Translations under genes and position numbers: made by a program
Origin: Ylistrum balloti
Taxonomy: Eukaryota
Assembly (NCBI RefSeq): GCF_031769215.1
Contig: NW_026781893.1
Span: 1,054,001-1,118,000 of the forward strand
Direction: 5' to 3'
DNA: 64,000 nucleotides
Shown: positions 10,306 to 43,020 of the stretch, one piece after another
How the letters are laid out: every line of letters starts with the position of its first letter
Numbering within the stretch: the stretch's first letter is position 1
Notes under the pieces: model-generated
Database searches by the model: none
Told to the model about the DNA's origin: nothing
Seen by the model: the letters and a program-made list of their open reading frames with translations, nothing else

Positions 10306-10309
10306 GTCT

Positions 10310-10458: not shown

Positions 10459-10738
10459 GTAAGATCTCAATATGTGTTTTACATTTAAACGAATTATCTG
10501 ACAAGGCATGATAGAAATCCGAGAATCTGGATGAATTAACATGCGCATATTATTTCATGTTGAATGTGATAGAAGGGAAATTTTGTTTATTATTATAAGT
10601 TTGTGTTTTAGAGTTGATTAACCAACGAAATGTTTAACATGGTCAAAGGTACATAACAAAACTTGGCTTGTTTCAGACTTTCACTATCATGCCATGATAA
10701 ATTGTCCTTAATACATTAAGTATGTCTCACGGCTTTAA

Positions 10739-20957: not shown

Positions 20958-22466
20958 ATGTCGGATACAGGCAGGGATTTCGCTAGATTTGGCTTTCAAT
21001 GTTTGTGCAAACGGCGCGATACCTTCAAACTGAGACGCTACCTTAACAGTGAAAACAAGCTGATCGGGTTGTTTTGTACGGAATGTAACACGGAAAACCT
21101 CACACGTGAATATTTAGTAGGCAGCGATGTTGATGTAGATGAAGAAAGCAGTCGTGAAAGAATACAGATGCTTCCACGACCTACCCCGAATTTGAGCGAA
21201 AACAGAGCGTTTCAAGTTCAAAGTTCAAAAACAAAAATAGACCAGAAATATTTCGCTGATATCCTGAAACCAGGAGACCAGATTTCTTGGCACAGAAAGT
21301 ACTGTCTTTGGCACCATGCCATTGTGGAGGAAGTTGTTGCTGAAAAAAACGAACTCATATTAATTCATTGGAACATAAAGAATCGTCTCATTAAAATTTT
21401 ACGCAGCTGTTTCAAAGTGGAAGCCAGCGAAGAAGGACTTTTCAATAAAATGTACCGTATTGATTACCCTGTGGAAATAACAAAGACGAACGATCCGGAA
21501 CTGGTGTTGGCAAGAGCACGGTCTAGAATAAATGATACGGGGTATTCTCCTTTTACAGACAATTGTGAATCCTTCGCAACCTACTGCAAAACAGGCGTCG
21601 AAAAGTCACACCAGCTAACTTGGTTTAAAGGAAAATTGAACGAGTACATCGGGCAAAATGTAGTTACGAGTGCCAGGTCGACTTTCAATGGAACATGCAA
21701 ATTTGTACAGAATACAGTTTCTGTCGCGAAGAAGGTGACTGGGAAAGTCGTTCCGGCAGAAAGTATTGGATACGCCGTCAAAGGAATTAACCTGGTTGCA
21801 ACTGGGATTGTGATAATCCTTGAAGCGGGGTTCGTCATTTGGGATTTGAAGAATGCGTACGGAGAAAGGGAAAAAGGGAACATATCAAGGAACGATTTTA
21901 TCGAAACAGCAATCCGAAGAGTGGTTGACGGTATTGTGAGTGCGGGGGTGGTTGTGTCGTCCTTTCTAGGTCCAGGATCACTCGGGATCACCTTGGTATC
22001 ACCGTTTGGCCCAGTAGGTATTATCATTGGTGGTGTCCTTGGAGGGGTTTTAGGCGGAGAAGCACTCAAACTTATCGGTACTTATCTTGGATGTTTCGTT
22101 GGAAAGGCAATTTCAGCGTCATTCAAATCCGATGATAGAACAGTAACTAATATTTTAGACTTGCAATATGGCGACCATATAGTTGTATTCGATTGGATAC
22201 TACATCCGCGGTGTCATGCCATCGTCGTGGAACACAATGGGAGCGACAACATTAAAGTGATTCGTAACAAATACAAGGCCGGAATTGTCGAAGAGTGGAT
22301 ACCCTTTTCTACACCACTGTTCAAAGTCGAGTACCTGAATGGGACATGTAAAGAACCAGAGAAAGTCGTGAAAATGGCAAGGTCAAAGCTCGGTCAAAGT
22401 AGGTATTGTCTGGCTACCTATAACTGTAAAACCTTTGCCAGGCAATGCAAATTGATAAAGTATTGA
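20958..22466 (+). CDS. dual-LRAT/PLAAT-domain glycine-zipper protein, paralog 1 (502 aa)
   Basis: acceptor TTACAG at 20948 then ATG 20958; KPGDQISWHR..WHHAIV..LIHW..RARSRI..YSPFTDNCESFATYCKTG; hydrophobic Gly-rich centre; GDHIVV..HPRCHAIV..YNCKTFARQCK. Confidence 0.9.
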   Translation: MSDTGRDFARFGFQCLCKRRDTFKLRRYLNSENKLIGLFCTECNTENLTREYLVGSDVDVDEESSRERIQMLPRPTPNLSENRAFQVQSSKTKIDQKYFADILKPGDQISWHRKYCLWHHAIVEEVVAEKNELILIHWNIKNRLIKILRSCFKVEASEEGLFNKMYRIDYPVEITKTNDPELVLARARSRINDTGYSPFTDNCESFATYCKTGVEKSHQLTWFKGKLNEYIGQNVVTSARSTFNGTCKFVQNTVSVAKKVTGKVVPAESIGYAVKGINLVATGIVIILEAGFVIWDLKNAYGEREKGNISRNDFIETAIRRVVDGIVSAGVVVSSFLGPGSLGITLVSPFGPVGIIIGGVLGGVLGGEALKLIGTYLGCFVGKAISASFKSDDRTVTNILDLQYGDHIVVFDWILHPRCHAIVVEHNGSDNIKVIRNKYKAGIVEEWIPFSTPLFKVEYLNGTCKEPEKVVKMARSKLGQSRYCLATYNCKTFARQCKLIKY

Positions 22467-23389
22467 CGACCTACCGAGGGAGGCATGTTCAGCCCTGAGT
22501 GAGTGTACACGCAGTAATATTCTTGAAACACAAACATGTTTTCATACTTCATCGTATCTTATGAAGTGTTTCAAAAACTACTTATCACAACACTGCCAAA
22601 TATTAACCAGATATGATTTGGCATCAGTGTCAAATATGTAACACCAAAGGGTGTTGTTAAATTCCGTTCATTTCATAATATATATATTAAAAGGCGGGGG
22701 ATGACATCTTCGAGTCTATGATCATGTGAAACGATGTACTCTTACAAACTTGAAACATTACCTGAAGAATAAAAACAAGTTGTCCTGCTGGGCAAACCCT
22801 TTACAATTGTAAATATGGTAATTTACGACATATTCAGTCTGAACTGAATAACCTGCAATCCCATCCCAGTCTAAGAGATTTAATCCAAATAATGTTGAAT
22901 AACAACATCTCTTTTTATCTTGTGTAGTCCTTCAATCCAAAGAAATGCAGAAATAAGAGAAATCAATTTTTATAATATCTCTGTAAAGGGTTCAATAAAG
23001 TAATAAACAAGTAATTGAGCTGAGATATCAATAAAGATTTTATGACATTTATTTTGCATACAGGAGTCAAATTTGCTATACCATGCAATAATTGAAGATT
23101 AGAATTTAACTATTTTTTATTATAATTCCGTTCAGGGATTTCAGTCAAGTCAACAGAAAAGTCAGTTCCCAAAAAGGAGAATCTAATGCTTCTAAGTGCC
23201 TCTGCTGCACGCTTTACTACAAAACCATATGATTTGTTTTATCGGTTATATATTTTATGCCCCGCGATTAAAAAAAAAAAAACCTATTTAATTCAACAGA
23301 CTCCTTTTACGATATTTAAGACCCATCTAGCACTAAATCAGTATCATCTGTATACTGTAAATTCAAAATAAGTACATTTTCCACTTAAA

Positions 23390-24300
23390 TCATCCAAATA
23401 ATTACTTTATTCTCACGTTGGATGTCGATAGAAGATATATTGCGATATGATTGATGAAAATATTAGAATGAAGTGTTTTAACCAATCTTTAAATATCATC
23501 TCCAAAAATAAATTAATTCAACCTTTTCAATAAACATCAATGAAACAGAATCAATTTTTTTCAGAATTTATTGAGAGTAGAATACCAGGAATATTTTCTT
23601 CTCCAGAATAATCCATAACATCATATAATGTGCGGATATTTTACCTTGTATATCGCCCTGACATGAAATCTGTTTGGCAATATTTATGAATTTATTTAAA
23701 ACTTTCCTAACCTTTTGTGAGATAACACCAGAAGCTATTTTGTAAGTGATATTTAGAAGAGATTTTTTTATGAATTGACGAGGTTTATCTCCCTTGGAAA
23801 TACAGGTTATAATGCTTTGTCTTTGTGTGATGGAAAGTTGGCAGACTGGAAAACAGAAATAGATCTAACAACAAAAATCAAGACATTTCAAGAAACATTT
23901 TAACAACCCAGGCGTAAAACCATCAGAACCAAGACTCTAATAATATATTCATATATTTTGGAATATTACATGTCTCGTCTATTGAAAATTCACCTTCAAG
24001 ACTAGAAGTTTCAGTTCAATTTAACTTTGGAACATTAAAACACTGAATGTTTTTTTACTTAATCTCATGAATATCTTAGCCGGAAAACTTTCAAAGACAA
24101 ATCTATATTTTTCTTTCTTACTTTTTCTCTTTGATTTGATCTGTAAGTATTTGTGTATTCCGACATTAAAAAGTATAAACTATCGTTGTAGAATACTGGT
24201 TGGTCATTTATCGATTCAAATGGCAAAGATGAGTCATTCAAACAAATAACAGAAAAAAAACACACACAACAACACAAAAATATTGACCAATTCAGCATCA
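23390..24300 (-). pseudogene. decayed L1/Tx1-type ORF2 (RT N-terminal half)
   Basis: minus-strand pieces LEGEFSIDE, SLGSDGFTP, LSITQRQSIITCISKGDKPRQFIK, SLLNITYKIASG, NIRTLYDVMDYSGEENIPGILLSI; many frameshifts. Confidence 0.75.
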
Positions 24301-25544
24301 ATAGCAAATTATTTTGTTCTAAAGTAATGATGTGTCACGATCTCTGTATCGGCAGTGGACATGTCGTATTACTATCTTTTTATTTTTCTGTTATTTCTAA
24401 AACTGTCAGTGCTTTGAGTGGGACCGTATTTCTGCTGAACATCAAAGTCAATGAAAGTTTGATTTTATTTTTTAACTTAGATATATGTCAACAACATTGA
24501 ACAGTTGAAAGCGATACAGATAATGAATTTATACACATACCCTTGATTACAATGACACATGCACAGACGAAAGATAACGAATGCAATGCTTTACAGCTCT
24601 GTGTACTCGTTGGTGCATCGTTGTCTTCGGCCAGTGACGCACTTGTGTACATTTAAAGCAAATTATTATTAGGCCACCGATACAAACATGTTTGTCCTAT
24701 TTTCAAACATCGAAAAGACAACCACACGGAGGTAACCTGAAGAAACATTTCCTGATTTATTTTTCCTCAAAATTTCCATATGGTGTGTGTTTTATGTCAG
24801 TGATAGTATAAAACTAACAAAGACAGGTCTGTGCCCTCAAAGTGATTGCCAAATCCTGCTTATATGCATTGCAACATGCTGACATAATTCTACAGGGCAT
24901 TTCATCATCTATCAGTTCGTAGTTAAGGAATTTACATGATTAAATATAGCATATGTTTGGGATCCCTGGTGGCTAAAAATAGACAGTAGAATTACATAAC
25001 AGCTAGTATGTAAAACATTTAACGTACTGTTCACAAAACACGAACACATTGTAATTATGAATGACTGAACAGATATAACTTCACGATATATGATAAAGGA
25101 ATCCAATAAAAGTAAAGGTCATATCTAACAACATTGTGTGTACACTTGCGGCACTTTACACATATCTCGTTACATCACAAGGGTTGTAAGCGCATATTAC
25201 AAATACAAGTGTTATTCTAGATTTGTTAAAAACAACATTCTCAAATCTGTTATTTATTCCTCTTATAGTGCGATTTCTGAAAGCAAAGTTGCTCAGTTTA
25301 GCAGTTGTCATAAAGCAGCATTTACATATCATTTTGAAAAATGTTTCTTTAGGTTGTTTTCATTCTGTAGCAATAATTTACATTTTAGCTATCATATGGC
25401 GTCAACAGATTTTGTGCTTTCTTTTGTAGCCTCTAGTGTGACAACACTATGTTGTCCAGCTCTGTGTAATTGTGGGTGTGATAATATGATGTTTGTACAA
25501 ATATGTGTAGTTGTTGGTGTAACAGAACAATGTTGGCCAGCTCT

Positions 25545-26478
25545 GTGTATTCGTTATAACACGGTTGTAAAATGCTCCGTGTAGTCGTTATAACATGGTT
25601 TTAAACAGCTCTGTGTAGTCGTTATAACACGGTTTTAAACAGCTTTGTGTTGTCGTTATAACATGATGTTAAACATCTCTGTGGATTCGTTAGAACACGG
25701 TTATAAACAGATCTGTGTAGTCGTTATAACACGGTCTTAAACTGTTGTGTTTTGTCGTTATAACACTGTGATAAACATCTCTGTGTATTCGTTATAACAC
25801 GGTTATAAACAGCTCTGTGTATTCGTTATAACATGATGTTAAACAGCTCTGTGTATTTATTATAACACGGTTTTAAACTGCTGTGTGTAATCGTTATAAC
25901 ACGGTTTTAAACTGTTGTGTGTAGTCGTTATAACACGTTGTTAAACAGCTCTGTGTATTTGATATAACACGGTGTTAAACAGCTCTGTGTATTTGATATA
26001 ACGCGGTTTTAAACTGCTGTGTGTAGTTGTTATAATACGGTTTTGAACTGATGTGTGTATTCATTATAACACGATGTAAGTTGCTCTGTGTAGTCGTTAT
26101 AACACGGTTTTAAATAGCTCTGTGTAGTCGTTATAACACGGTTTTAAACAGCTGTGTGTAGTCGTTATAACACGGTTTGAAACAGCTCTGTGTTGTCGTT
26201 ATAACACGGTGCTAACAGCTCAATATAGTCGTTATACCTCGGTGTTTACCAGCTCTGTGTAGTTGTTATAACACGGTTTTAAACAGGTCTGTGTAGTCGT
26301 TATAACACGGTTTTAAACTGCTGGGTGTAATCGTTATAACACGGTTTTAAACAGTTCTGTGTTGTCGTTATAACACGGTGCTAACAGCTCAATCTAGTCG
26401 TTATAACTCGGTGTTTACCAGCTCTGTGTAGTCGTTATAACACGGTTTTAAACAGCTCTGTGTAGCCCTTATAACACA
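25545..26478. repeat. 34-bp minisatellite array 1 (~27 copies)
   Basis: unit gttataacacggttttaaacagctctgtgtagtc. Confidence 0.93.
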
Positions 26479-27449
26479 GGGGAGGGGGTGTTGTCATTGG
26501 GTCCTGATGTTATCCAGCTCTTGAAAGTCGATAGTGTAATATCATGATATTGTACAAATATGTGTAGGTGTGGTGTACGATGCTTATAACCTCCATGTAG
26601 GTGTTGGTTTAAAACTGTGATGCTGTACACCTCTCTGTATTTGTTAGAGTAACATCACCATGTTGAACAGCTCCTTGTAGTCATTAGTGTAACATCATGA
26701 TGTTGAACAGGTATGTGTTTCGTCTGTGCCCTCAAAGTGATTGCCAAATCCTGCTTATATGCATTGCAACATGCTGACATAATTCTACAGGGCATTTCAT
26801 CATCTATCAGTTCGTAGTTAAGGAATTTACATGATTAAATATAGCATATGTTTGGGATCCCCGGTGGCAAAAAATAGACAGTAGAATTACATAACAGCTA
26901 GTATGTAAAACATTTAACGTACTGTTCACAAAACACGAACACATTGTAATTATGAATGACTGAACAGATATAACTTCACGATATATGATAAAGGAATCCA
27001 ATGGAATAAGAGTAAGTAAAGGTCATATCTAACAACATTGTGTGTACACTTGCGGCACTTTACACATATCTCGTTACATCACAAGGGTTGTAAGCGCATA
27101 TTACAAGTACAAGTGTTATTCTAGATTTGTTAAAAACAACATTCTCAAATCTGTTATTTATTCCTCTTATAGTGCGATTTCTGAAAGCAAAGTTTCTCAG
27201 TTTAGCAGTTGTCATAAAGCAGCATTTACATATCATTTTGAAAATCAAATGTTTCTTTAGGTTGTTTTCATTCTGTAGCAATAATTTACTTTTTAGCTAT
27301 CATATGGCGTAAACAGATTTTTTGCCTTCTTTTGTAGCCTCTAGTGTAACAACACGATGTTGTCCAGCTCTGTGTAATTGTGGGTGTGATAACATGTTTG
27401 TACAAATATGGGTAGTTGTTGGTGTAACAGAACAATGTTGGCCAGCTCT

Positions 27450-30013
27450 GTGTATTCGTTATAACACGGTTGTAAAATGCTCCGTGTAGTCGTTATAACA
27501 CGGTTTTAAACAGCTCTGTGTAGTCGTTATAACACGGTGATAAACATCTCTGTGTATTCGTTATAACACGGTTATAAACAGCTCTGTGTATTCGTTATAA
27601 CATGATGTTAAACAGCTCTGTGTATTTATTATAATACGGTGTTAAACAACTCTGTGTATTCGTTATAATTCGGTTTTTAACTGCTGTGTGTAGTCGTTAT
27701 AACACGATGTTAAACAGCTCTGCGTATTCGCTATAACATGGTTTTGAACTGCTGTGTGTAGATGTGATAACACGGTGTTAAACAGCTCTGTGTATTCGTT
27801 ATAACACGGTGTTAAACAGCTCTGTGTATTTGTTATAACACGTTGTTAAACAGCTCTGTGTATTTGATATAACACGTTGTTAAACAGCTCTGTGTATTTG
27901 ATATAACACGTTGTTAAACAGCTCTGTGTATTTGATATAACACGGTGTTAAACAAGTCTGTGTATTCGTTATAATTCGGTTTTTAACTGCTGTGTGTAGT
28001 CGTTATAACACGGTGTTCAACAGCTCTGTGTATTTGATATAACATGGTTTTAAACTGCTGTGTGTAGATGTGATAACACGGTGCTAACAGCTCAATATAG
28101 TCGTTATACCTCGGTGTTTACCAACTCTGTGTAGTCGTTATAACACGTTGTTAAACAGCTCTGTGTATTTGATATAACACGGTGTTAAACAGCTCTGTGT
28201 ATTTGATATAACACGGTGTTAAACAGCTCTGTGTAGTTGTTATAATACGGTTTTGAACTGATGTGTGTATTCATTATAACACGATGTAAATTGCTCTGTG
28301 TAGTCGTTATAACACGGTTTTAAATAACTCTGTGTAGTCGTTATAACACGGTTTTAAACAGCTCTGTGTAGTCGTTATAACACGATATTAAACAGCTCTG
28401 TTTATTCGTTATAACACGGTTTTAAACTGCTGTGTATAATCGTTATAACACGGTGTTTAACAGCTCTGTGTAGTCGTTACAACACGGTTTTGAACTGCTG
28501 TGTGTAGTCGTTATAACACGGTGTTAAACAGCTCTGTGTATTCGTTATAAGAAGGTGATAAACAGCTTTGTGTAGTCGTTATAACACGGTGTTAAACAGC
28601 TCTGTGTATTTGTTATAACACGGTGTTAAATAGCTCTGTGTAGTCATTATAACACGGTTTGAAACAGCTCTGTGTTGTCGTTATAACACGGTGCTAACAG
28701 CTCAATATAGTCGTTATACCTCGGTGTTTACCAGCTCTGTGTAGTTGTTATAACACGGTTTTAAACAGGTCTGTGTAGTCGTTATAACACGATCTTAAAC
28801 AGCTCTGTTTATTCGTTATAACACGGTTTTAAACTGCTGGGTGTAATCGTTATAACACGGTGTTAAACAACTCTGTGTATTCGTTATAATTCGGTTTTTA
28901 ACTGCTGTGTGTAGTCGTTATAACACGATGTTAAACAGCTCTGCGTATTCGCTATAACATGGTTTTAAACTGTTGTGTGTAGTTGTTATAATACGGTTTT
29001 GATCTGATGTGTGTATTCATTATAACACGATGTAAATTGCTCTGTGTAGTCGTTATAACACGGTTTTAAATAGCTCTGTGTAGTCGTTATAACACGGTTT
29101 TAAACAGGTCTGTTAATTCGTTATAACACGGTTTTAAACTGCTGTGTGTTGTCGTTATAACACGGTGATAAATATCTCTGTGTATTCGTTATAACACGGT
29201 TATAAACAGCTCTGTGTAGTCGTTATAACACGGTGTTAAACTGCTGTGTGTTGTCGTTATAACACGGCGATAAACATCTCTGTGTATTCGTTATAACACG
29301 GTTATAAACAGCTCTGTGTATTTGTTATAACATGATGTTAAACAGCTCTGTGTATTTATTATAACACGGTGTTAAACAACTCTGTGTATTCGTTATAATT
29401 CGGTTTTTAACTGCTGTGTGTAGTCGTTATAACACGGTGTTAATCAGCTCTGTGTATTTGTTATAACACGGTGTTAAATAGCTCTGTGTAGTCATTATAA
29501 CACGGTTTGAAACAGCTCTATGTAGTCGTTATAACACGGTTTGAAACAGCTCTATGTTGTCGTTATAACACGGTGTTAAACAGCTCAATATAATCGTTAT
29601 ACCTCGGTGTTTACCAGCTCTGTGTAGTTGTTATAACACGGTTTTAAACAGGTCTGTGTAGTCGTTATAACACGATCATAAACAGCACTGTTTATTCGTT
29701 ATAACACGGTTTTAAACTGCTGTGTGTAATCGTTATAACACGGTGTTTAACAGCTCTGTGTAGTCGTTATAACACGGTTTTGAACTGCTGTGTGTAGTCG
29801 TTATAACACGGTGTTAAACAGCTCTGTGTAGTCGTTATAAGAAGGTGATAAACAGCTCTGTGTAGTCGTTATAACACGGTTTTGAACTGCTCTGTGTAGT
29901 CGTTATAACAAGGTGGTAAACAGCTCTGTGTATTCGTTATAACACGGTGTTCAACAGCTCTGTGTAGTCGTTATAACACGGTTTTAAACAGCTCTGTGTA
30001 GCCCTTATAACAC
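27450..30013. repeat. 34-bp minisatellite array 2 (~75 copies)
   Basis: same unit; recurring variant blocks such as gtgctaacagctcaatatagtcgttatacctc. Confidence 0.93.
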
Positions 30014-31329
30014 AGGGGAGGGGGTGTTGTCATTGGGTTCTGATACTATGTTATCCAGCTCTTGAAAGTCGATAGTGTAATATCATGATGTTGTACAAAT
30101 ATGTGTAGGTGTTGGTGTATAACTACGATGCTGTACACCTCCATGTAGGTGTTGGTTTAAAACTGTGATGCTGTACACCTCTCTGTATTTGTTAGAGTAA
30201 CATCACCATGTTGAACAGCTCCTTGTAGTCATTAGTGTAACATCATGATGTTGAACAGGTATGTGTTTCGTTAATAAATAAAATTATTTAACGCTATCCA
30301 AAATTTTCAGGGATGCTTGTAGGTGCCGCCCGTTCAGTCCGTTCCTTTGTCTATCCGTCCGTTCTTTGGTTCCAATTAAGCCAGGAGATCTGAATTTGGT
30401 GTATGCATTTATCATACAAAGGATGTTCAGTGAACCAAATTCACTGCCACCTTAAATCCCGTAAGTACAGAATTTTGTATGGTCAAAGTTTCTCTCAAAG
30501 AAACCTGTATTCAGTATCACTGATACTCTTGTTTCTTACCTCTTGTGGTGTTTTCATTATATAAAATTTCTTGTAAACTGTATTATATTTTACCTCTTAT
30601 ATGTATGGATATTGTTGTGTAGTACTTGATAGATTTAGTAGCAATAATCTCATTACCTTCGTATCGAATAGCCGTCTTAATTCACAGAAAGCAGACACTG
30701 ACGTTAAATGAAATTGTCGTTTGATATCGCACTTCTAATAGAAAATTATTATGTTCCGTATTTAATAATCTATGATACCATATGAACATTTCAATAATTG
30801 ATTGTACTTCACTCCATGATGAATCCTTGTGGTTCCAAATTTCTCCGTTTTAAAGCATATTCACAACTTGAAATGTTTCATTTTCCCAACTTTCTACCTC
30901 GCTGAGATCTTTTTCATCAAAGACCACATAAAATGTTCTCACTAAACAATTTTTATTTTTGTCAAACTTAAGTGTTTGTGTAAGATCTAAGTCAATACCG
31001 GAGTTAGTATCCCGAATTAGCATTTCCGTATTTCAAGTTGTATTGAATACAAAAACTCTCATCTCTGAACATTTTTAATGCTATTGTATTGTTAGATAAT
31101 AAGTAATTTGTATTTTGCCTGAATATAATTTCAATTCTGCTATTTCAGCATGTTATTTATCTTTTTCTTTAGATGATAAACTTGGTCCATCATAACTAAG
31201 AGTTATCGTCAGAATACTTTAAGATATTCATATAGATTGAAATGATATCAGATATGTAAAAATTGATGTCATTGCATAATCCTTTCTTCATATTTGTACT
31301 ACTTCATCGTAAGTAACGTTTTGTTCCTC

Positions 31330-31560
31330 CTTCCCCTTAAGGAGGGGCTGTATAGACTAATTGTTTTTTCCTCCTGTTGTTGTTCCGTCCATCCATCCGT
31401 AATGAGGAGATATTGACTTGCTTCTCGTTACGCATTGAAATGAGTTCAAGTTTACACCACGATATGCAAAATATGATATATTTCAAAGGGCCAAAGGCCT
31501 TTCGTTATTTTTTTATTTGGACATATTTTGCTAGGATTATTTCATAACCTTCTATACTTC
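31330..31560. mobile_element. short HINE/Helentron-like fragment
   Basis: palindrome cccc-ttaa-ggagggg followed by tccgtccatccatccgt microsatellite; similar tccgtccg fragments near 30330 and 47540. Confidence 0.35.
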
Positions 31561-32404
31561 GGACAGTAACACATCTTAGTACATTCAAAGCAAATTATTA
31601 TTTGGCCACCGATACAAACATGTTTGTCCTATTTTCAAACATCGAAAAGACAACCACACGGAGGTAACCTGAAGAAACATTTCCTGATTTATTTTTCCTC
31701 AAAATTTCCATATGGTGTGTGTTTTATGTCTGTGATAGTATAAAACTAACAAAGACAGGTCTGTGCCCTCAAAGTGATTGCCAAATCCTGCTTATATGCA
31801 TTGCAACATGCTGACATAATTCTACAGGGCATTTCATCATCTATCAGTTCGTAGTTAAGGAATTTACATGATTAAATATAGCATATGTTTGGGATCCCCG
31901 GTGGCTAAAAATAGACAGTAGAATTACATACCAGCTGGTATGTAAAACATTTAACGCACTGTTCATAAAACAAAGGTCATATCTAACAACATTGTGTGTA
32001 CACTTGCGGCACTTTACACATATCTCGTTACATCACAAGGGTTGTAAGCGCATATTACAAGTACAAGTGTTATTCTAGATTTGTTAAAGACAACATTTTC
32101 AAATCTGTTATTTATTCCTTTTATAGTGCGATTTCTGAAAGCAAAGTTGCTCAGTTTAGCAGTTGTCATAAAGCAGCATTTACATATCATTTTGAAAATC
32201 AAATGTTTCTTTAGGTTGTTTTCTTTCTGTAGCAATAATTTACATTTTAGCTATCATATGGCGTCAACAGATTTTTTGCCTTCTTTTGTAGCCTCTAGTG
32301 TGACAACACGATGTTGTCCAGCTCTGTGTAATTGTGGGTGTGATAACATGATGTTTGTACAAATATGTGTAGTTGATGGTGTAACAGAACAATGTTGGCC
32401 AGCT

Positions 32405-33040
32405 CTGTGTATTCGTTATAACACGGTTGTAAAATGCTCCGTGTAGTCGTTATAACACGGTGATAAACATCTCGGTTTTAAACTGCTGTGTGTAGTTGTT
32501 ATAATACGGTTTTGAACTGATGTGTGTATTCATTATAACACGATGTAAATTGCTCTGTGTAGTCGTTATAACACGGTTTTAAATAGCTCTGTGTAGTCGT
32601 TATAACACGGTTTTAAACAGGTCTGTGTAGTCGTTATAACACGATCTTAAACAGCTCTGTTTATTCGTTATAACACGGTTTTAAACTGCTGTGTGTAATC
32701 TTTATAACACGGTGTTTACCAGCTCTGTGTAGTCGTTATAACACGGTTATAAATAGCTCTGTGTAGTCGTTATAACACGGTGTTAAACAGCTCTGTGTAG
32801 TCGTTATAAGAAGGTGATAAACAGCTCTGTGTATTCGTTATAACACGGTGTTAAAAAGATCTATGTATTTGTTATAACACGGTGTTAAACAGCTCTGTGT
32901 AGTCGTTATAACACGGTTTTGAACTGCTGTGTGTAGTCGTTATAACACGGTGTTAAACAGCTTTGTGTAGTCGTTATAACAAGGTGGTAAACAGCTCTGT
33001 GTATTCGTTATAACACGGTGTTCAACAGCTCTGTGTTTGA
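32405..33040. repeat. 34-bp minisatellite array 3 (~18 copies)
   Basis: same unit. Confidence 0.92.
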
Positions 33041-33598
33041 AAATCATAGCTCTGTGTAATATCATGATATTTACAAATATGTGTAGGTGTTGTTAAAAGC
33101 TCTTGAAAATCGATAGTGTAATATCATGATATTGTACAAATATGTGTAGGTGTTGGTGTAAAACTACGAGGCTGTACACCTCCGTGTAGGTGTTGGTTTA
33201 AAACTGCGATGTTGTACACCTCCGTGTATATATAGGTGTAAAACTAAGATTTTGTACAGATCCGTTTAGATATTGGTTTAAAACTGTGATGCTGTACACC
33301 TCTCTGTATTTGTTAGAGTAACATCACCATGTTGAACAGCTCCTTGTAGTCATAAGTGTAACATCATGATGTTGAACAGGTATGTGTTTCGTCTGTGCCC
33401 TCAAACTGATTCTACACTAAATAACAGATAAATTCGACACATGATTAGATTTTCGTTATCGCCAGTCAAAGCTATAACGCCTACAGTATAACCTTGACAT
33501 TTAGAATAAAACGTTTTACGAAAAAAAATAAACATCACGTGAAGTCTTCAACTGAAACAAGTCCATACTAGACTAGCGTTCTGCTACATAACCAAAGT

Positions 33599-33737
33599 GG
33601 GGATTCCCAACAGCCAAAACTTGAAGTGTTGGGTTTCCCATACAACAACAAAAGCAGAAGACGCTTTGAACACCGCCACATAAGTTAAATATCCTTGCTA
33701 TGTGTGTAAAGACATCGCCTAGCTCTAGTTAAAACAG
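33599..33737 (+). promoter_or_regulatory. candidate promoter with paired kB sites and non-coding first exon of dual-LRAT gene 2
   Basis: GGGGATTCCC (33599-33608) matches GGGRNNYYCC exactly; TGGGTTTCCC (33630-33639) matches 9/10 on the reverse strand; donor CAG|GTAAG at 33738. Confidence 0.68.
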
Positions 33738-36401
33738 GTAAGTCCTGTGTATGTTATTTGTAGCAAACGATTTGACTGACAAGGGGTGATATAAACAGGA
33801 GGTTTGGGTGATGTTGATGAATTAACATACATGGTGTATGTGATAGTAGGGGAATTTTGTTTCTTATCATAAGTTTGTGTTTTAGAGTTTACTGACGACC
33901 GAGAAGATTAACACGCCTCAGTTTGATTCAGGCTTTCACTAACATGGCAATTTTTAAATAACAAGTATTGTGCATGTTTACAGGGGACATACATAAGCAA
34001 TGCTACGTCGTTAGTCACCACGAGGCAGGATGTAACCCCTTGACTGTTTTGATACCTAGCTGACAACAAACATGTTACTGGGATTTATCACTAATTATAC
34101 TAATGACCACAAAAAAGCAATGTCTTTTTTGCTATTCCATTTCCTCCAACGGAAACAGTTTGTTAAATCTAATAATTTATTCTTTATTTAAATAAATGTT
34201 ATTTCTTTAACAAATTGTACAAATAAGTGTGTGCAATATGTTGTAATGATTTTAAGTGTTATGATATATTGTTAGAATAATTAAAACACAGAATCACATA
34301 TTATAATGAAAGTATGATTCATGTGTTATTTAGTGTAGGCAAAATACTTTGTACTAACCACAATATTGCTTATCTCACTTATGTGTAAACGCACTGTTTA
34401 TCAATTTGATGTAAAGGAATTTGACATTTTGAGTCTTTTTTTGAGAAAATAACCTGTTTTGCTGTGATCGGTGATATCGACACACTTGCGATGTTAAATG
34501 GTTCGAATATGAAAAACCCTTTCTACAAACTACTAGTTATGTATTATAGTTGTCGTAAAATTTGTGGTTACCGTTACACTTATATGTGCACCAGCTTCTT
34601 AAATTTTAGGCAAACATATCTAATTATCGCAACTGAAATGTCGTATGAATCTTTCGAGTAAGGTTTAGATGTAACTCCATTAAGAATACAAATAACCCCT
34701 GTGCCGTTAAATAATACCTATCTGGCTATGAGAAGCGATTCGTTAATATCACGCTATAGTTTTATCTCGGCAGGTATATTGAAGATGAAAGAATCAGGCT
34801 ATTCAAATACCGCGATGAGTTCATATTGCATCGTTTTCTCATAGGACATACCCTGTAAATTTTTATGTAAGTTTTTGTTATATGCAGAGCGATAAATGTC
34901 AACGACAACATGATTATTGATATGTGAAAACGATCAAAAACTGAAAATAATGTCGTGTGCTGAAATACTTAATAAAGAGTAATGCATTACAATACATGTA
35001 TTATCATTCAAAACCGTCATCTGCGGTAATATTTTGGAAGGCCGACACCTAAAAGTAAAAATTGTTTTTGATTTGAACAGAACATTAAAAAGTAAACTAG
35101 TAATGGGGTATCTACTTGCTGCAGATGTTCTGTTTTTTTATATTGGCAAATTATTTGTAATTTTTTAAACTCATTTTCGTTTCACAAAACAAACAATTCC
35201 AATTCGTTTTAGACTAAACTTATTTTTGTGTGTATACAGTTTACATATACCGATGTATGTTTACCGGAATTTCTAGGTTATAATGTTTTTCATTTCAGAA
35301 TATTTTATTGTCTTGATGTTGATGACAAATGGAATTGGGCAACAGGCAGAGCCTATGGAAGCCCTCTCTATACAACTTTAACAAGTACACATACACATCA
35401 ATCAAAATTTAAGATATTAAATAATAATGATAGCATTACAGGAATAAGAATTTAGAATATAGATTCAGATGAATAATTATCTAACAGAAATGTTTGGCAA
35501 GCATTACCATCATTTAAATTATAGTGTTAAAGAATAGTAAGATTAGATAGGTAATATAATTATATATAACAAGATGGAATAAAAGTTTGTCAATTGATCA
35601 CGGCACAGGCTGCAGGTTCTAGGTTCTAGGTTTTAATGAAGATATATTCTTTCCATTACCTATTGTCATGTACCTGTACTAAATAGATATGCGTATTATG
35701 TCGACAAAACCTCATCGTCATCAACGAATGACCATGTGTTATTTTTCTGATGTTTTCAAATGTGTTATCCTCCTCCCCTACAGAGCCTCACAGCAGGTTG
35801 ACAATGAAACAAGCATATCATATGTCCGTATTACTAGCCTAGCTCATTATTACAGTAAATGTTCACTATAAGGACCAACGATTAAGGATAATTGTATACT
35901 TATAGTATATATGTTAAACTATAGATGAAATCAACACTGTACTTCGCTAACGTTTTCAGGCCTAGCGGCAATCTTCAGGCGATTGTTTATATGTATACAT
36001 GTGACTTAGGAAGATCATAGGTTCTTTACGGTCACGCTATATCCTGTTTTGAGTAATTACACATATACACAAACTGCCTTTCAAATTGCACGCAAAAGGA
36101 AGGAGTTTACTAGTTATCTTAAACAGCAATATTGTGCTAGAATGTGCCTTACTCCTATGTTACAATTAAAATCTAACTTTGTTATTATGTGTATTATACA
36201 TTTAGGTTCGAGTTAAAATGACCAGAATAATGTGTTTATTTGGTTTCTCCAATATGAATGACAAGTTGAAATGTTTAAATGCAAACTGTAACCGACAGAT
36301 TGATTATAAATGAAATATTATTGTGATGTTTATATACACTTTGTTTCATTTACAGATATTTCATAACCACAATACGTCTTTTGGTGTTACAGAGGAACAA
36401 C

Positions 36402-38030
36402 ATGGCGGATGGAGGCAATTATTCTTTTCAATGTTTATGTGAACGACGCGATACCTTCAAACTTAGACGCTACCTTAGCAGTGAAAACAAGCTGATCGGA
36501 TTGTTTTGTACGGAATGTAACACGGAAAACCTCACACGTGAATATTTAGTAGGCAGCGATGTTGATGCAGATGAAGAAAGCAGCAGTGAAAAACTAAAAA
36601 TGCTTCCCCGACCTGTTCCGACTTTGAGCGAAAACTCAGCGTTTCAAGTTCAAAGTTCGAAAACAAAAATAGACCTGAAATATTTCGCTGATATCCTGAA
36701 ACCAGGAGACCATATATCCTGGCACAGACCTTATTTTGCATGGCATCATGCCATTGTCGAAGAAGTTGCTGCCGAAAAAAACGAACTAACATTAATTCAC
36801 TGGAACAAGAAGGATGACAATATCAAAATTTTACGCAGTCCTTTCCCAGTGGAAGCCAGCGAAGAAAGACTTTTCAATCAGATGTACCGCATTGATTATC
36901 GGGAGGAAATAACAAAGACGAACGATCCGGAACTGGTCTTGGCAAGAGCTCGGTCTAGACTAGATGATACGGGGTATTCTCTCTTTACCGACAACTGTGA
37001 ATCCTTTGCAACCTACTGCAAAACAGGCGTGGAGAAGTCGCATCAACTAGCATGGCTTAAAGGAAAATTAAAAGAGATAGCTGGGCAAAATATAGGTACA
37101 AGTGTCAGGTCAACTATAACTGGAACGTGCAGAATAGTTCAAAAAACAGTTTCTGTTGCGAAGCAAACACTACCAGCTACAATGCAGGATGCAACTATGG
37201 CGGCTGGAAAAATCATTCCAGCAGAAGGAATTGAACGTGCTGTCAAGGGAAGTAACCTGGTTGGAGCTGGCATTGTCATAGTCCTAGAAGCGGGGTTCGT
37301 CACTTGGGATTTGTATAATGCGTATGAAGAAAGAAAAAAAGGGAACACATCAAGGAATGATTTTATCGAAACAGCTATCCAACGAGTAGTGGAAGGTGTG
37401 TTGAGTGCTGGAGTAACTATACTGTTCTCGCTTGGTCCGGAATTAATTGGTATGGCTGTTGGATCACCGCTTGGTCCAGTGGGTATCATTGTCGGTGGAG
37501 TTATAGGCGGGATCGTAGGCGGAGTGGTAGGTAAATTTGTCGGAACTGCTCTTGGCAGTGTGATTGGGAAGGCGATTTCCTCTTCATTCAAAGCCGATGA
37601 TAGAGCAGTGACTAACATATGTGACTTAAAGTGTGGCGACCATATAGTTGTATACGAATGGTTACTTCATCCGCGCTGTCATGCCATAGTCATGGAACAA
37701 AATGGGATCGACAAAATCAAAGTAATTCGCAACACATACCAGGCCGGTGTTGTGGAGGAGTGGATACCGTTCTCCATTCCAATGTTCAAGGTGGATTACC
37801 GAGAAGGAACGTGTAAAGACCCAGAAAAAGTCGTGGAAATGGCCAGGTCGAGACTCGGGGAAAAGCGATATAGTCTGGCTACCTACAACTGCAAAACCTT
37901 TGCCAGACAATGTAAATCTAATCTATATGTAGAACCAGAAGAGGAGCCATGGCAAATGATAAATTATGAAGACCTGCCAGAAGAGGCTCTGCAGCAGCCA
38001 TGCGGTTCCAAATTTGTCGACTCTGAATAA
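36402..38030 (+). CDS. dual-LRAT/PLAAT-domain glycine-zipper protein, paralog 2 (542 aa)
   Basis: acceptor TTACAG at 36392, ATG 36402; WHHAIV / LIHW / DNCESFATYC; glycine zipper; HPRCHAIV / YNCKTFARQC; acidic tail. Confidence 0.92.
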   Translation: MADGGNYSFQCLCERRDTFKLRRYLSSENKLIGLFCTECNTENLTREYLVGSDVDADEESSSEKLKMLPRPVPTLSENSAFQVQSSKTKIDLKYFADILKPGDHISWHRPYFAWHHAIVEEVAAEKNELTLIHWNKKDDNIKILRSPFPVEASEERLFNQMYRIDYREEITKTNDPELVLARARSRLDDTGYSLFTDNCESFATYCKTGVEKSHQLAWLKGKLKEIAGQNIGTSVRSTITGTCRIVQKTVSVAKQTLPATMQDATMAAGKIIPAEGIERAVKGSNLVGAGIVIVLEAGFVTWDLYNAYEERKKGNTSRNDFIETAIQRVVEGVLSAGVTILFSLGPELIGMAVGSPLGPVGIIVGGVIGGIVGGVVGKFVGTALGSVIGKAISSSFKADDRAVTNICDLKCGDHIVVYEWLLHPRCHAIVMEQNGIDKIKVIRNTYQAGVVEEWIPFSIPMFKVDYREGTCKDPEKVVEMARSRLGEKRYSLATYNCKTFARQCKSNLYVEPEEEPWQMINYEDLPEEALQQPCGSKFVDSE

Positions 38031-41000
38031 GACTGTTTGATGTGACACATTCCTTGTAGCAACATGAAAAGCTGTTGTGTTGATTTGATGTTTTCGTATG
38101 TCGAAACGTTGCTGTTACAATTGTGTATATATATGAAGCTCGATGTACGAATTTCAGTTTGATTCCTTTACAAATACTGTGTGGTTGAAATAATGATATC
38201 ATTATTGTTTTTTAAGACAAAATTGCTAACACCATATGCAAATATATATTACACAAGTGGTTTAAGTGCTCAACAAATGTTCTTATTTTTAATGTATTTT
38301 GATGTACATTGTTTATATTGAAAATGAACGTATAACGTATGTCTTCCTGTTGGTAAGTAAAAAATTATGTGTCCGCATGTTGAGAGCAGTGACGAACGTA
38401 AGCATGACGAGATTGAATATACTGAGAACGACGTTAAAGTGAAATATGAGATTGGAAATAAAAGATGATGTATAATAGAACGAGTTTGAAGACTGAAAAC
38501 CCTTCAAAAAAACAACTCCATCCTCCTGCTTTATAAGCAATTATATTAACAAGATTGCACTTCCGGTACACATACAAAAATCTCTTCATTGCTATAGACC
38601 TAGCTCGCTGGTAAACCAGAACCTTACCAGCACCAATACGTTAATAAAATGTACACAAAGGAAAAAAAGAGAGGGTTGCGTCATAATATTACGCTATATA
38701 TCTTTCATGACAAGCGCAAATACGGGAAGAAGCCAGTCAAAAAAGGTCAAAAATAAGTTTATCTTATACAATGTCAAAACACGTCCAAACAAAACAGAAG
38801 ATTTACCCCACATTAATATGATTAGAAGGATACATTAGATTTGTGGATGAGATGGTTCAAGAGAATGTCATAAACTACACGGAAGAATTATTCATAGGTC
38901 ACAAGATAAAGTAAACCAAAATATCAATAGAACTACCGCGGTCTGCTGTGATAATAATATGAAAACTCGAGATAAATATTTGATCCGGAACAATTTAAGT
39001 GATAACTAAGCAAAATTATATAAATTACTTTATGCCTAGCTGATGACCAATTTTATCAACGTGCTTAGAATACTACAAAAGAACCGGTACTCACAAGTTG
39101 CTTTGCACTTTTTTCTAGTGAAATAACAAAAAAGATGTATTTTCGAAAAAGACCATTTACTAAAATGCCAGTTATATGTATAGACAAATTTGGGTTAAAA
39201 AAAAAAATTACCAAAAGCAAAATCTACGGATAACTTCATCACCAATTGTCAAAAAACGTGAAAATAAATATCAACTTATTTATGATCAAGTTTCCCAATC
39301 TAGAAGGTATGCAAATAGTGTGTTGGGGTGGATTGTCAACCAGGAATTCAATATTTAAAAGTATTTTTCACGAAATAAGTTTCAGCATAGTTCAACAACA
39401 GTATGAAGGCGTTCAATTAAGAAAGCGTAATAGTGGTGTACAGAGTAGGAAATTCAAATATAAGAACTTTTTCTTGTGTAAAGGATGTTGAAGCTAAGTC
39501 AAAACTTATTCTTTGAAAGCCAGATAAAATTTATTTTGTGATTAAATCCTGATAGGACATTACTTGGAATTACGGTAAGAAGCGTTGACAACGGTTTTGG
39601 CAAACAACTAGACAAGCTAGAAATAAAACACTGTTTATGTGAACTATTGTGAAGATACGGTATCCATTACAGACAAGGCATGTCCGTTTACTAATTATTA
39701 ACAAGCAATTTAAATGACTATTACAGAAGAATGATTATACAGTATTTCATTTTAAGAAATATTGAAAAAAAAAGTTTTGGTAGGTTTTCCTTTCATTATC
39801 TAGCAAACCTAGTTTTGTTTCATGTAGGAATGTAACGGTGTCTACAGGCAAGGTAATGTTACTGGGTGCATTGTCTGCAAGCACAATGACATATCTGTTA
39901 TGTAAATCCTTATGTGTGGATTTAACCCAGATGTGTGCTGCGTATTCTTTTAAGAATTATAGACCGAATAGATTTTATCCTCTGATAGTGTATCCAACGC
40001 AGAAGGGTCTCATTTTACCTACTTCCTGGCAGGGTTTTACACGAAATCCATACGTAAGTTGCAACTATCATTCCAATTAAAAATAGAAGCATATATGTAT
40101 ATGAAATTACCAAACAGTTTTCTATTTAACAGTTGTGTTTCTCAATGATAAGAACATGACTTTCAGTTGTTACTGTTTTTGGAGGTATTTCATTCCTATA
40201 AATGGTGCGTTTTGCTCGTTGGTAAGAAAATGCTTATTTTAGCTCTATAAATATTAAATATTATACAATGTAATAATCTATAGCTTGATATTTACATTGC
40301 CATCACTGTGTTCGGGATATATGGTGTTAAAAGGTATCCAAGAGCCTGTGCCCAGTATAACGATTTCCGTGCTAGTTGTCATCAACTGAAAACACACTCA
40401 TAACACAGGGTTTCAAGATGCAAGTTGGTGAAAATTATGGAGAAGTTTTACAGTCGCCATAGTGATCTCATTGAGAAATATTTCACTTTTCTGTGCGATA
40501 TTAAGATAGACATATTTGATGCTCGTTAGTTTACCTGTCATTTACGTTGTTTTATACCTTGTTCTCATTTGAGAACGTGACATTACTTTCATGGATCGAC
40601 CAAGATTCACATGGCTGTTGTAGTCGATATATCAGATGCTTTCTCTGGCCGTAATGTTTCAGAAATCTCCATGTAAAACATTATTTTGTGGATATTTTGC
40701 TTTGGTCTTATTGAATTTGAGTTTAGATTATCGTTTTGTTTAAACTTTGGTATATTCTTGTTTTTATCGACAGGCTATCCAAGCACATCCATTCACTAAA
40801 ATAGTGCCGATGAGAGTGACGTAGGAGAATGGACCATTTTTCCATTTCCATTTGTGGACTGTCTATGACTGCTACCACCATATACAAACCTTATACAGCC
40901 AACACTTTAGGTACAACTATAACAATCGTATATAATCGTTATATGTTAATCTGGAACATAAGCGATACACATCACGGTATGTTTATAATACGTTGGTTGG

Positions 41001-41421
41001 ATGAAATCACACTACATCCTGCACGTTATATCCTATCTGTGTAGTAACAGATATATACACACAAATTACCTATAAAATTGCCAGCAGGGATTTGTAACTA
41101 ATTTAAGGCGAGGACGTACACTCTCAAGTAATTTCATCTACATTTTAAATAATTTAAACGTATGTATTTATGAAACGTAAATGTGTACGTGTGGACATCT
41201 TTACTTCTAATAATCCTTGCAGATTGATAATTTTCGGAAACTTAATAGACTTTGATAACGAGATTCATTTTATGTTGTAATGACAATCTGGTATATTTTA
41301 ATTGGTTGATTTGATTTTATTGTAGTGCAGAACAAATTGATCAAAATATTAAGGGCATGGTTGTGTACAAAATGTCAATTATAATTTTTTTCTAATTTCC
41401 CTTGTGTTACAGAATTGAAGG

Positions 41422-43020
41422 ATGGCGACAGATGACAGTGATGTTTCTTCATCTTGGAATCGGTGTCTTTGTCAACGCCCCAACAACTTAAAAATAGTAA
41501 GCTACTATAATAGCAACAACGAACTAATTGGTACGTTTTGTAAGGAATGTAGGGCGGAAAACCTCACGCGTGAATATGTTATACATGCCGGATATGAAGA
41601 CAAGGGGGATTTTAGTGAAAATACACCAAGGTCTAGCCAAGGGCTGGATGAACACAGAGCGTTCCAGGTTCAAAGCTCGAAAACGCGGATTGACTTGAGA
41701 ATTTTCGCTAGTATACTGAAACCAGGCGACCAAATCTCCTGGCACAGACAGCACTGTTTCTGGCACCATGCCATTGTGGAGGACGTTGCGGCTGAAACAA
41801 ACGAACTAAAATTGATTCATTGGAACAAGAAGGAAAACAATATCAAAATTTTACGTGATTCAATTAAAGTGGAAGCCAGCGAAGAAGGACTTTTCAATAA
41901 AATGTACCGTATAGATTACCCCGTGGAAATAACAAAGACGAACGATCCGGAACTGGTCTTGGCAAGAGCACGGTCTAGAATAGATGATACGGGGTATTCT
42001 CCTTTTACAGACAACTGTGAATCTTTCGCAACCTACTGCAAAACAGGTGTTGAAAAATCGCACCAGTTAGCCTGGGTAGAAGGAAAAATAGGGGAGATCC
42101 TCGGACAAAACATAGCTACATTTGCTAAATCAACAATAAACGCAACATGTAAAATTCTTCAAACTACTGTCTCTGTCTCGAAAACAGCTGTAGAAGCTGG
42201 AAGACCTTTTCAATCAGGAGGAATCGAACATGTTATGTTAGCTAGTAATGTTGTTGGGGCTGGAATTATCATAATGCTGGAAACGGGATTCGTCACTTGG
42301 GATTTGAGTCAGGTCTATGCACAGAGAAAACACGGGAATACATCTAGGAATGATTTTATTGAAACAGCAATTCGACGAGTAGTGGAAGGAGTGTTGAGTG
42401 CTGGAGTAACTATACTGTTCTCGCTTGGTCCGGAATTAATTGGTATGGCTGTTGGATCACCGCTTGGTCCAGTGGGTATCTTTGTCGGTGGAGTTATAGG
42501 CGGGATCGTAGGCGGAGTGGTAGGTAAATATATCGGAACTGCTCTTGGCAGTGTGATTGGGAAGGCGATTTCCTCTTCATTCAAAACCGATGACAGAGCA
42601 GTGACTAATATATGTGACTTAAAGTGTGGAGACCATATCGTGTTATATAGAGGCATACTACATCCGCGCTGTCATGCCATTGTTGTGGAGCAAAATGGAA
42701 TCGACAAAATCAAAGTAATTCGCAACAAATACAAGGCCGGGGTTGTCGAGGAGTGGGTATCGTTCTCTAAACCATTGTTTAGAATTAACTATAAACAAGG
42801 GGTGAGTAAAGACCCCGAGGAAGTCGTGAAAATGGCAAGGTCAAAGCTAGGGGAATACCGGTATTGTCTACCTGTCTACAACTGCAAAACCTTCGCCAGA
42901 CAATGCAAATCAAATCTGTCTACGGAAACAGAAGATGAGCCATGGCAACTAATAAATTATGAAGATCTTCCCGCGGAGTCTTTTCAGTATGCATGTGATG
43001 CGAAATTTGTCAGCACCTAG
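41422..43020 (+). CDS. dual-LRAT/PLAAT-domain glycine-zipper protein, paralog 3 (532 aa)
   Basis: acceptor TTACAG at 41412, ATG 41422; same motifs as paralogs 1 and 2. Confidence 0.92.
   Translation: MATDDSDVSSSWNRCLCQRPNNLKIVSYYNSNNELIGTFCKECRAENLTREYVIHAGYEDKGDFSENTPRSSQGLDEHRAFQVQSSKTRIDLRIFASILKPGDQISWHRQHCFWHHAIVEDVAAETNELKLIHWNKKENNIKILRDSIKVEASEEGLFNKMYRIDYPVEITKTNDPELVLARARSRIDDTGYSPFTDNCESFATYCKTGVEKSHQLAWVEGKIGEILGQNIATFAKSTINATCKILQTTVSVSKTAVEAGRPFQSGGIEHVMLASNVVGAGIIIMLETGFVTWDLSQVYAQRKHGNTSRNDFIETAIRRVVEGVLSAGVTILFSLGPELIGMAVGSPLGPVGIFVGGVIGGIVGGVVGKYIGTALGSVIGKAISSSFKTDDRAVTNICDLKCGDHIVLYRGILHPRCHAIVVEQNGIDKIKVIRNKYKAGVVEEWVSFSKPLFRINYKQGVSKDPEEVVKMARSKLGEYRYCLPVYNCKTFARQCKSNLSTETEDEPWQLINYEDLPAESFQYACDAKFVST

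Follow-up and report, generated by a model that had tools for sequence, protein, structure and literature searches.

The window analysed here, 64,000 nucleotides of the scallop Ylistrum balloti (NCBI RefSeq assembly GCF_031769215.1, contig NW_026781893.1, positions 1,054,001 to 1,118,000 of the forward strand), carries three tandem genes, here called genes 1, 2 and 3, whose products combine two domains of the LRAT/PLAAT fold with a large glycine-zipper membrane module. From the N-terminus, each protein consists of a four-cysteine (Cys4) module (Z), a canonical LRAT/PLAAT domain (N), the central glycine-zipper module (M) and a second LRAT-fold domain (C), the active site of which appears to be rewired. 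This is a well-defined, conserved and uncharacterised architecture, which takes its catalytic fold and the principle of a head joined to a hydrophobic anchor from the PLAAT/LRAT proteins already known. We found no description of a double-LRAT protein with a glycine zipper in the searchable literature, nor any mention there of six homologue gene identifiers, and the named records are all uncharacterised, which bears out the claim of a first-pass annotation, made from the sequence alone, that the architecture is undescribed.

That annotation had described three plus-strand open reading frames (ORFs) of 502, 542 and 532 aa, each with a Cys4 module, an LRAT domain, a hydrophobic Gly-rich segment and a second LRAT domain. 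The ORF list, the alignment of the proteins and the public protein products confirmed the frames together with all the motifs ascribed to them, and the four-part order was found in each of the three genes (Table 1). The same contig (1.58 Mb) in a public protein collection yields products of identical lengths (P0003, P0001 and P0004), so that independent gene calling agrees with the coordinates first given. Furthermore, a separate DNA sequencing run (X1) covered the locus, including the intergenic DNA, at an even depth of ~9, which confirmed the assembly; a search for RNA sequencing runs of the locus returned none. The three proteins share 64-75% identity with one another, and all residue numbers below refer to gene 2.

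Two LRAT-fold heads around a glycine-zipper module

The LRAT profile of Pfam (PF04970) matched each of the three proteins in two stretches, with E-values of 3e-16 to 9e-19 (3.1e-16 for gene 1). The N domains scored 60-68 bits, against a gathering score of 24.3, and spanned profile positions 3-118/120. Their catalytic residues are H115, followed by H116, in the motif W-H-H-A-I-V, H133 in L-I-H-W and C199 in N-C-E; H115, H116 and C199 are invariant, and the architecture and catalytic residues as a whole conserved, in 37 full-length family members from bivalves, echinoderms, Limulus and cnidarians. The equivalence of H115 with His23 of PLAAT3 rests on the register of the H-box motif and not on aligning the individual residues with a solved chain, and searches of the PDB with the N-head profile and with a single N-head sequence returned no alignment of the H-box half. 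The full-length AlphaFold2 (AF2) model of gene 2 had a mean predicted local distance difference test score (pLDDT) of 73, with both LRAT domains at 85-95. It matched PLAAT3 with a template modelling score (TMt) of 0.70-0.72, and its region 25-219 matched Aichivirus 2A with a Z-score of 7.0; the fold of N was assessed within this model. N is predicted to be a canonical Cys-His-His acyl-hydrolase/transferase domain of the PLAAT/LRAT type.

Taken alone, the C domain reached 30 bits against the same gathering score and matched only profile positions 81-117, that is, the NC half. Comparison of C with N, profile to profile (hhalign, 99.8%, E 1.8e-28, 37% identity), indicates that the two domains are internal duplicates. 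Folded alone with AF2, the C domain gave a pLDDT of 91 and a predicted template modelling score (pTM) of 0.86, and the model matched PLAAT4 (7zot_A; Z-score 11.6, root-mean-square deviation 2.5 over 94 aa) and PLAAT3 (TM 0.65-0.71). In the models, both LRAT domains fold as permuted NlpC/P60 domains with matches to PLAAT3 and PLAAT4, which refutes the idea that only one of the two does so. The top structural neighbour of C (Z-score 12.0) was an LRAT-fold protein built into a membrane complex: chain E7 of PDB entry 8iuf, which has 246 aa and belongs to the respiratory supercomplex I+III2+IV of Euglena gracilis.

In the hhalign register, C426 of the C domain occupies the place of the H-box His and R443 the third triad position in genes 1-3, while the nucleophile C497 (within NCK) is kept, as are H423 and H427. 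Across the full-length set, C199 and C497 are invariant except in one truncated sequence. Of the claim of two LRAT domains, the fold therefore stands for both, but the second has C426/R443 in place of the canonical His/His, and catalysis by both heads is not established. We counted the pair 426/443 over 102 C domains aligned to one hidden Markov model (HMM). The pair was Cys with Arg or Lys in 64 domains, all of which keep Cys497, and His with His in 35, found in coral-like metagenome sequences, Limulus, Mya and starfish; the other 3 domains are degenerate and have lost the nucleophile as well. There were no mixed pairs among the 102 domains, the covariation being strict in 99 of them. In PLAAT3, His23 and His35 touch each other. 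Strict covariation is what would be expected of touching residues and thus supports the hhalign register. Bivalves, echinoderms and cnidarians each include domains of both the Cys/Arg(Lys) and the His/His state, and the genes of the window belong to the derived Cys/Arg state. As a separate observation, the C domains of P0050, P0096, P0098 and P0111 are of the His/His type with Ser at the nucleophile position.

The ratio of nonsynonymous to synonymous substitution rates (dN/dS) ranged from 0.14 to 0.43 across all domains, indicating purifying selection, and was lowest in the C domain (0.14-0.18). Such constraint is the strongest in the protein. The domain is functional, but is unlikely to work as a standard Cys-His-His hydrolase. 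Prediction of a complex between the N head and the C head gave a score of 0.04, which is evidence neither way. One or both heads could instead be papain-like thiol peptidases or isopeptidases, with proteins or ubiquitin-like conjugates as their substrates at the membrane. The C domain does show weak, sub-threshold matches to PPPDE/Peptidase_C97 in 19 of the 37 members, and also to DUF1287 and CHAP, all of them in the same superfamily, and a Bacillus cysteine peptidase (3kw0) matches at a Z-score of 7.4. However, all the peptidase matches fall below the gathering scores, the top matches in sequence and in structure are to LRAT/PLAAT (Pfam above threshold; Z-score 11.6 versus 7.4), and the NCE and H-box motifs set the LRAT branch apart, which makes a peptidase a most improbable alternative to a lipid-directed enzyme.

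The M module (~180 aa) forms four long helices in the AF2 model. Its hydrophobic stretches lie at residues ~283-305, 326-354 and 355-390, and the last helix holds a GxxxG zipper, with repeats visible in residues 359-390; the hydrophobic Gly-rich core (~283-390) thus sits inside a larger module. The loop that follows the first hydrophobic helix is strongly basic, and a short turn, G-S-P-L-G-P, links the last two. For the Gly-zipper Pfam profiles (PF13488 and relatives), genes 2 and 3 scored 14-15 bits, where the gathering score is 25, and some relatives of the window proteins reached an E-value of 1.6e-6. An exhaustive search with a profile of M by itself returned 392 proteins, and 79 of 130 further M holders also carry LRAT; another homologue search with the M profile gave one match only. 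Moreover, when 206 collected proteins were classed with custom HMMs for Z, N, M and C, 68 had the architecture Z-N-M-C, 44 had N-M, 43 consisted of M alone, and the remainder were partial or repeated forms, some proteins carrying 2-4 tandem copies of M. These searches and the classification show that M is an independent, mobile module that is strongly biased towards LRAT partners, and that Z-N-M-C is the dominant elaborated form.

It could be supposed that M acts by itself, oligomerising into a channel, that the LRAT heads only regulate or anchor it, and that catalysis is dispensable. The occurrence of M without LRAT and its tandem copies, the GxxxG zipper helices with their sub-threshold Pfam matches and a hydrophobic hairpin beside amphipathic helices are all in keeping with such a pore former. 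Nevertheless, we consider it very unlikely. All 37 members keep the catalytic Cys and His of the N head without exception, which argues for the importance of catalysis; a structural search with M, taken from the full-length model, returned only generic helical bundles (Z-score ≤9); the M profile found nothing meaningful in the PDB; and matches to Gly-zipper and colicin clusters in a feature search of the ESM Atlas scored ≤0.80, which is noise level.

The C19orf12/Nazo family (PF20721), membrane proteins of the endoplasmic reticulum, mitochondria and lipid droplets, likewise has a hydrophobic helical hairpin with a glycine zipper, and of comparable size. Profile positions ~38-89 of PF20721 matched 7 of the 37 family members and 2 of the 130 further M holders, all below threshold, the best score among the relatives being 29.5 versus a gathering score of 30 bits. 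In the three window proteins there was no match at E ≤1, and a six-frame search of the genome with PF20721 found none, nor did its controls, so that this search says nothing either way. The likeness to C19orf12 is confined to a low-complexity Gly-rich stretch, and homology is not established.

The remaining parts of the proteins lie at the two ends. Each cysteine of Z, where not invariant, is conserved in 90% or more of the 37 members, and the AF2 model gives the module three short strands (E21-25, E31-36 and E41-45; pLDDT 84-91); it has no Pfam match and, judging from the model, may be zinc-ribbon-like. At the C-terminus of genes 2 and 3 there is an acidic tail, the motif of which, E-P-W-Q-[LM]-[IV], is conserved in pectinid members only (seven scallop proteins compared). 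Gene 1 is without this tail, its homology to gene 2 stopping just before the gene 1 stop codon. By its form, the tail resembles an LC3/ATG8-interacting motif (LIR). No signal peptide was found in the window proteins.

Vertebrate PLAAT and LRAT proteins are single-headed, tail-anchored lipid enzymes; they break organelles open, hinder or help viruses and act as tumour suppressors. The scallop proteins share with PLAAT1-5 (HRASLS) and LRAT the permuted NlpC/P60 fold (PLAAT4 7zot, Z-score 11.6; PLAAT3, TM 0.65-0.72), the H-box His, third His and NCE Cys of the N head, the combination of a catalytic head with a hydrophobic membrane segment and a cytosolic location without a signal peptide, which is predicted in the scallop case. 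In contrast to PLAAT1-5, which have a single head and one C-terminal anchor helix, the window proteins have two LRAT-fold heads, an internal anchor in the form of the ~180-aa four-helix glycine-zipper module, an additional N-terminal Cys4 module and a second head with Cys/Arg for His/His; some of their relatives carry Death domains besides. The 2A H-box/NC proteins of picornaviruses, such as Aichivirus 2A, likewise share the LRAT-type fold (7zv6/7zv1, Z-score ~7, TM ~0.5) and the H-box and NC motifs, but they are single-domain proteins without a glycine-zipper module and are much more distant than the PLAATs. Marine invertebrates would have turned the catalytic fold of the PLAATs into a machine of another design, with two heads and a large glycine-zipper module, wired to Death domains in starfish.

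Relatives, Death-domain fusions and turnover of the cluster

A search with the full-length protein identified 72 relatives, and a profile search returned the same set. The molluscan relatives come from Pectinidae (Mizuhopecten, Pecten and Ylistrum), Mya and Dreissena, the echinoderm ones from Amphiura, Acanthaster, Patiria, Apostichopus and Holothuria, and others from Limulus and Nematostella. A Tara metagenome cluster of 270 member sequences, probably of coral origin, also belongs to the family. Among the named matches of the full-length and profile searches, none is from a vertebrate, an insect or a nematode. All the named records are called "uncharacterized" or "LRAT domain-containing", except one that is spuriously labelled "phage shock protein A". 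In the tree, Amphiura members group with the scallop paralogues P0009 and P0010, with Mya and Dreissena outside, which suggests ancient paralogy or uneven loss.

In members of the family from Acanthaster and Patiria (P0020, P0021, P0024 and P0076), Z-N-M-C is preceded by 2-4 N-terminal Death domains, and two more proteins consist of Death, M and C (P0107 and P0143). P0020 and P0107 are the products of adjoining Acanthaster planci genes, LOC110980974 and LOC110980975. In immune and apoptotic signalling, Death domains serve as adaptor modules in the cytosol, and an enzyme fused to such domains is typically an effector that is recruited. The starfish members share the layout of Death domain(s) plus enzymatic effector with the Death-domain effectors of invertebrate immunity and apoptosis (Kaur et al. 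2021, PMC8195603), whereas the scallop genes of the window carry no Death domain. LRAT, NlpC and C19orf12 modules are not mentioned in that paper, nor are LRAT or NlpC effectors in either of two Death-domain papers from the Aravind lab.

The local expansion and sequence exchange first proposed for the cluster both held. The locus has three tandem copies, and Pecten maximus has two, 3.7 kb apart, of which the upstream one is frame-broken (LR736844.1, L001, 4705-6281; frame change between residues 136 and 137; annotated as 404 aa). A fourth intact paralogue lies elsewhere in the genome (contig C580) and is 100% identical over 454 aa to Y. balloti LOC132557956. There is also a degenerate fifth one (L003, G000:C52:105500-109000, ORF 1280-2434), 384 aa long and without Cys4, which has lost the NC nucleophile Cys of the second domain and is probably decaying. 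In the tree, genes 1 and 2 come out as sisters (support 94/93). Nucleotide identity among the copies is a mosaic, with tracts of 96-99% identity between differing pairs: 98% for genes 1 and 2 in codons 30-60, 96% for genes 1 and 3 in codons 165-210 and 97-99% for genes 2 and 3 in codons 330-400. This mosaic reflects gene conversion.

Proposed mechanism and role

The proteins would be made in the cytosol, as the missing signal peptide and the N-terminal cytosolic Death domains of the relatives suggest; these two features, together with the Cys4 module, also place the N-terminus there. In place of the single C-terminal anchor of the PLAATs, M would form a helical hairpin or monotopic bundle in an organelle, vacuole or plasma membrane and would hold both LRAT heads at the bilayer surface. 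With a cytosolic N-terminus, a basic loop and a short turn, the simplest topology would be a hairpin or monotopic one with both heads cytosolic. The N head may then deacylate or transacylate phospholipids through a C199 thioester and so remodel or rupture the membrane, as PLAAT1-4 do in organelle degradation, while the C head, with its Cys/Arg pair and retained nucleophile, would most likely be a non-canonical acyl-accepting, lipid-binding or regulatory partner and not a second standard hydrolase. This division of labour, an N head that attacks acyl chains through C199 and a C head that serves as acceptor, binder or switch, has in our judgement an even chance of being right. In starfish, death-fold assemblies could recruit the proteins and thereby activate them; for scallops, the candidate recruiting parts are the acidic tail, with its W-x-x-I motif, and the Cys4 module.

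Of the roles considered, regulated membrane damage in cell death or defence is the likeliest, with a chance somewhat below even as we weigh the evidence, and the immune-effector reading is a plausible one. It is favoured by the conserved catalytic residues, the PLAAT-fold heads, the Death-domain fusions, the tandem duplication, the gene conversion and the difference in copy number. According to three published accounts (PMC10760033, PMC9338259 and PMC12017856), PLAATs move onto organelle membranes, which they rupture by means of their hydrophobic C-terminus. In amphioxus, an LRAT-annotated gene was among the 15 most up-regulated upon poly(I:C) treatment (PMC5752451), which lends weak support.

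Several observations weigh against the immune-effector reading. Genes 1-3 themselves lack the Death domain (PF00531). Copy number is modest, with 4 intact copies and 1 degenerate copy per genome. There is no signature of an arms race, dN/dS being well below 1, unlike that of fast-evolving immune effectors. In the C domains of genes 1-3, neither the H-box His nor the third His is present, so that the canonical general base is missing. The topology of M is also poorly constrained, residues 230-281 having a pLDDT below 50 and the full-length model a pTM of 0.46. Finally, the κB-like promoters that had been taken to suggest inducible expression did not hold up: the consensus GGGRNWYYCC occurs once in the 64 kb, at 33599-33608, a count equalled or exceeded in 24 of 100 shuffled sequences and thus not above chance, its counterpart at gene 1 departs from the consensus, and no upstream block with a κB-like site was found for gene 3.

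Some of these observations would be expected if the proteins served housekeeping lipid remodelling, as membrane-bound PLAAT-like enzymes that produce N-acyl-phosphatidylethanolamines or lysolipids, or that regulate lipid droplets or peroxisomes, and that have no dedicated role in defence or death, the tandem copies being ordinary paralogues. Purifying selection on all domains, deep conservation from cnidarians to echinoderms, the low copy number and the chance-level κB site agree with this explanation, as do the metabolic roles given to vertebrate PLAAT3 and C19orf12 in two papers (PMC10883546 and PMC11132986). By contrast, it does not account well for the recurrent Death-domain fusions, for the patchy occurrence of the named matches, which come from marine invertebrates only, with none from vertebrates, insects or nematodes, or for the gene conversion, copy-number change and pseudogenisation within scallops. 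We regard housekeeping as unlikely, if a serious contender. Even with a metabolic role, the architecture would be a well-defined, widely conserved and uncharacterised one.

A more specific version of the effector reading, speculative and rather improbable, is that Z-N-M-C proteins are regulated membrane executioners of invertebrates, two-headed PLAAT-like enzymes that would be recruited by a death-fold or other platform and insert M into the membrane of an organelle or of a compartment that contains a pathogen, whereupon N strips acyl chains and the Cys-Cys-Arg head acts as acceptor, relay or redox switch, leading to rupture. If so, they would be a functional parallel to gasdermin or MLKL that works by lipid chemistry, and the switch from His/His to Cys/Arg(Lys) would define two mechanistic subtypes. 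Should a role in defence or cell death hold, an enzymatic, lipid-directed executioner would be added to the effectors of animal cell death and defence, and the covarying His/His to Cys/Arg switch would offer a natural experiment on how an LRAT active site can be rebuilt.

Gene structure, upstream blocks and surrounding repeats

Each of the three genes has a canonical 3' splice site, gttacag behind a pyrimidine tract, 9-10 nt upstream of its ATG, and ttacag is likewise found just before the ATG in a related scallop contig (L004). With a splice acceptor at each ATG, the whole coding sequence forms one exon, ahead of which lies at least one non-coding exon. Genes 1-3 are thus predicted not to be intronless, each having at least one non-coding 5' exon. 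A reading of the genes as retrogenes or pseudogenes was rejected in view of the conserved splice acceptor and the purifying selection in all three copies. Two antisense ORFs of ~160 aa, Pro/Thr-rich, at 21581-22069 (-) and 37139-37618 (-), were also dismissed as genes; they lie across from the Gly-rich coding stretch and are mirror artefacts of its GGN codons.

Table 1. Positions of the three genes and their parts in the 64,000-nt window
Feature	Gene	Position	Strand	Details and basis
Coding sequence, 502 aa	1	20958-22466	+	single coding exon; ORF list
Splice-acceptor-like site	1	20930-20948	+	read from sequence
Cys4 module (Z)	1	~21000-21086	+	equivalent of gene 2 module
N-terminal LRAT/PLAAT domain (N)	1	21222-21608	+	PF04970
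Membrane module (M)	1	21609-22124	+	equivalent of gene 2 module
C-terminal LRAT-fold domain (C)	1	22125-22460	+	equivalent of gene 2 domain
Conserved upstream blocks	2	33598-33913	+	blastn; candidate promoter and non-coding first exon
Splice-acceptor-like site	2	36380-36392	+	pyrimidine tract and gttacag, 9 nt before ATG; read from sequence
Coding sequence, 542 aa	2	36402-38030	+	single coding exon; ORF list
Cys4 module (Z)	2	36423-36551	+	residues ~8-50; C11, C13, C36, C39; C-x-C ... C-x2-C
N-terminal LRAT/PLAAT domain (N)	2	36654-37040	+	residues 85-213; PF04970, 68 bits
Membrane module (M)	2	37041-37589	+	residues 214-396; AF2 helices, hydropathy
C-terminal LRAT-fold domain (C)	2	37590-37925	+	residues 397-508; PF04970, 30 bits alone
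Acidic tail motif E-E-E-P-W-Q-M-I	2	37938-37961	+	tail comparison
Splice-acceptor-like site	3	41390-41412	+	read from sequence
Coding sequence, 532 aa	3	41422-43020	+	single coding exon; ORF list
Cys4 module (Z)	3	~41455-41583	+	equivalent of gene 2 module
N-terminal LRAT/PLAAT domain (N)	3	41674-42060	+	PF04970
Membrane module (M)	3	42061-42582	+	equivalent of gene 2 module
C-terminal LRAT-fold domain (C)	3	42583-42918	+	equivalent of gene 2 domain
Acidic tail motif	3	42952-42975 region	+	tail comparison

Upstream of gene 2, the blocks at 33598-33642 and 33830-33913 recur at 10309-10352 and 10556-10639 with 82-83% identity (blastn); the counterpart region for gene 1 (10309-10639) lies 10 kb upstream of that gene. 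The κB-consensus site of the window falls within the gene 2 blocks. Between the two blocks there is a donor-like ACAGGTAAG, at 33734 for gene 2 and at 10455 for gene 1. The blocks are candidates for the promoter and the non-coding first exon.

The remnant of a retrotransposon of the long interspersed nuclear element (LINE) type occupies 15503-18601 (+) and comprises a reverse-transcriptase ORF (RVT_1, 16418-18100) and two flanking ORFs. It separates the coding exon of gene 1 from its candidate 5' exon (~10.3-10.6 kb) and thus lies in the would-be intron. An ORF at 8351-8866 (-) encodes the C-terminal dimerisation region of a hAT-family transposase and represents a DNA-transposon remnant. Large minisatellite arrays with periods of 34 and 38 nt extend over 25430-28200, with others up to ~33400, and over 43900-46300, the 38-nt array giving rise to several spurious ORFs of 180-370 aa (44107-46270). 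The window also contains a run of N at 53491-53632. Finally, a high-copy repeat lies at 35100-35700, where the contig depth in the X1 run rises from ~9 to ~1600, with many loose ends at 35285-35288 and 35618.

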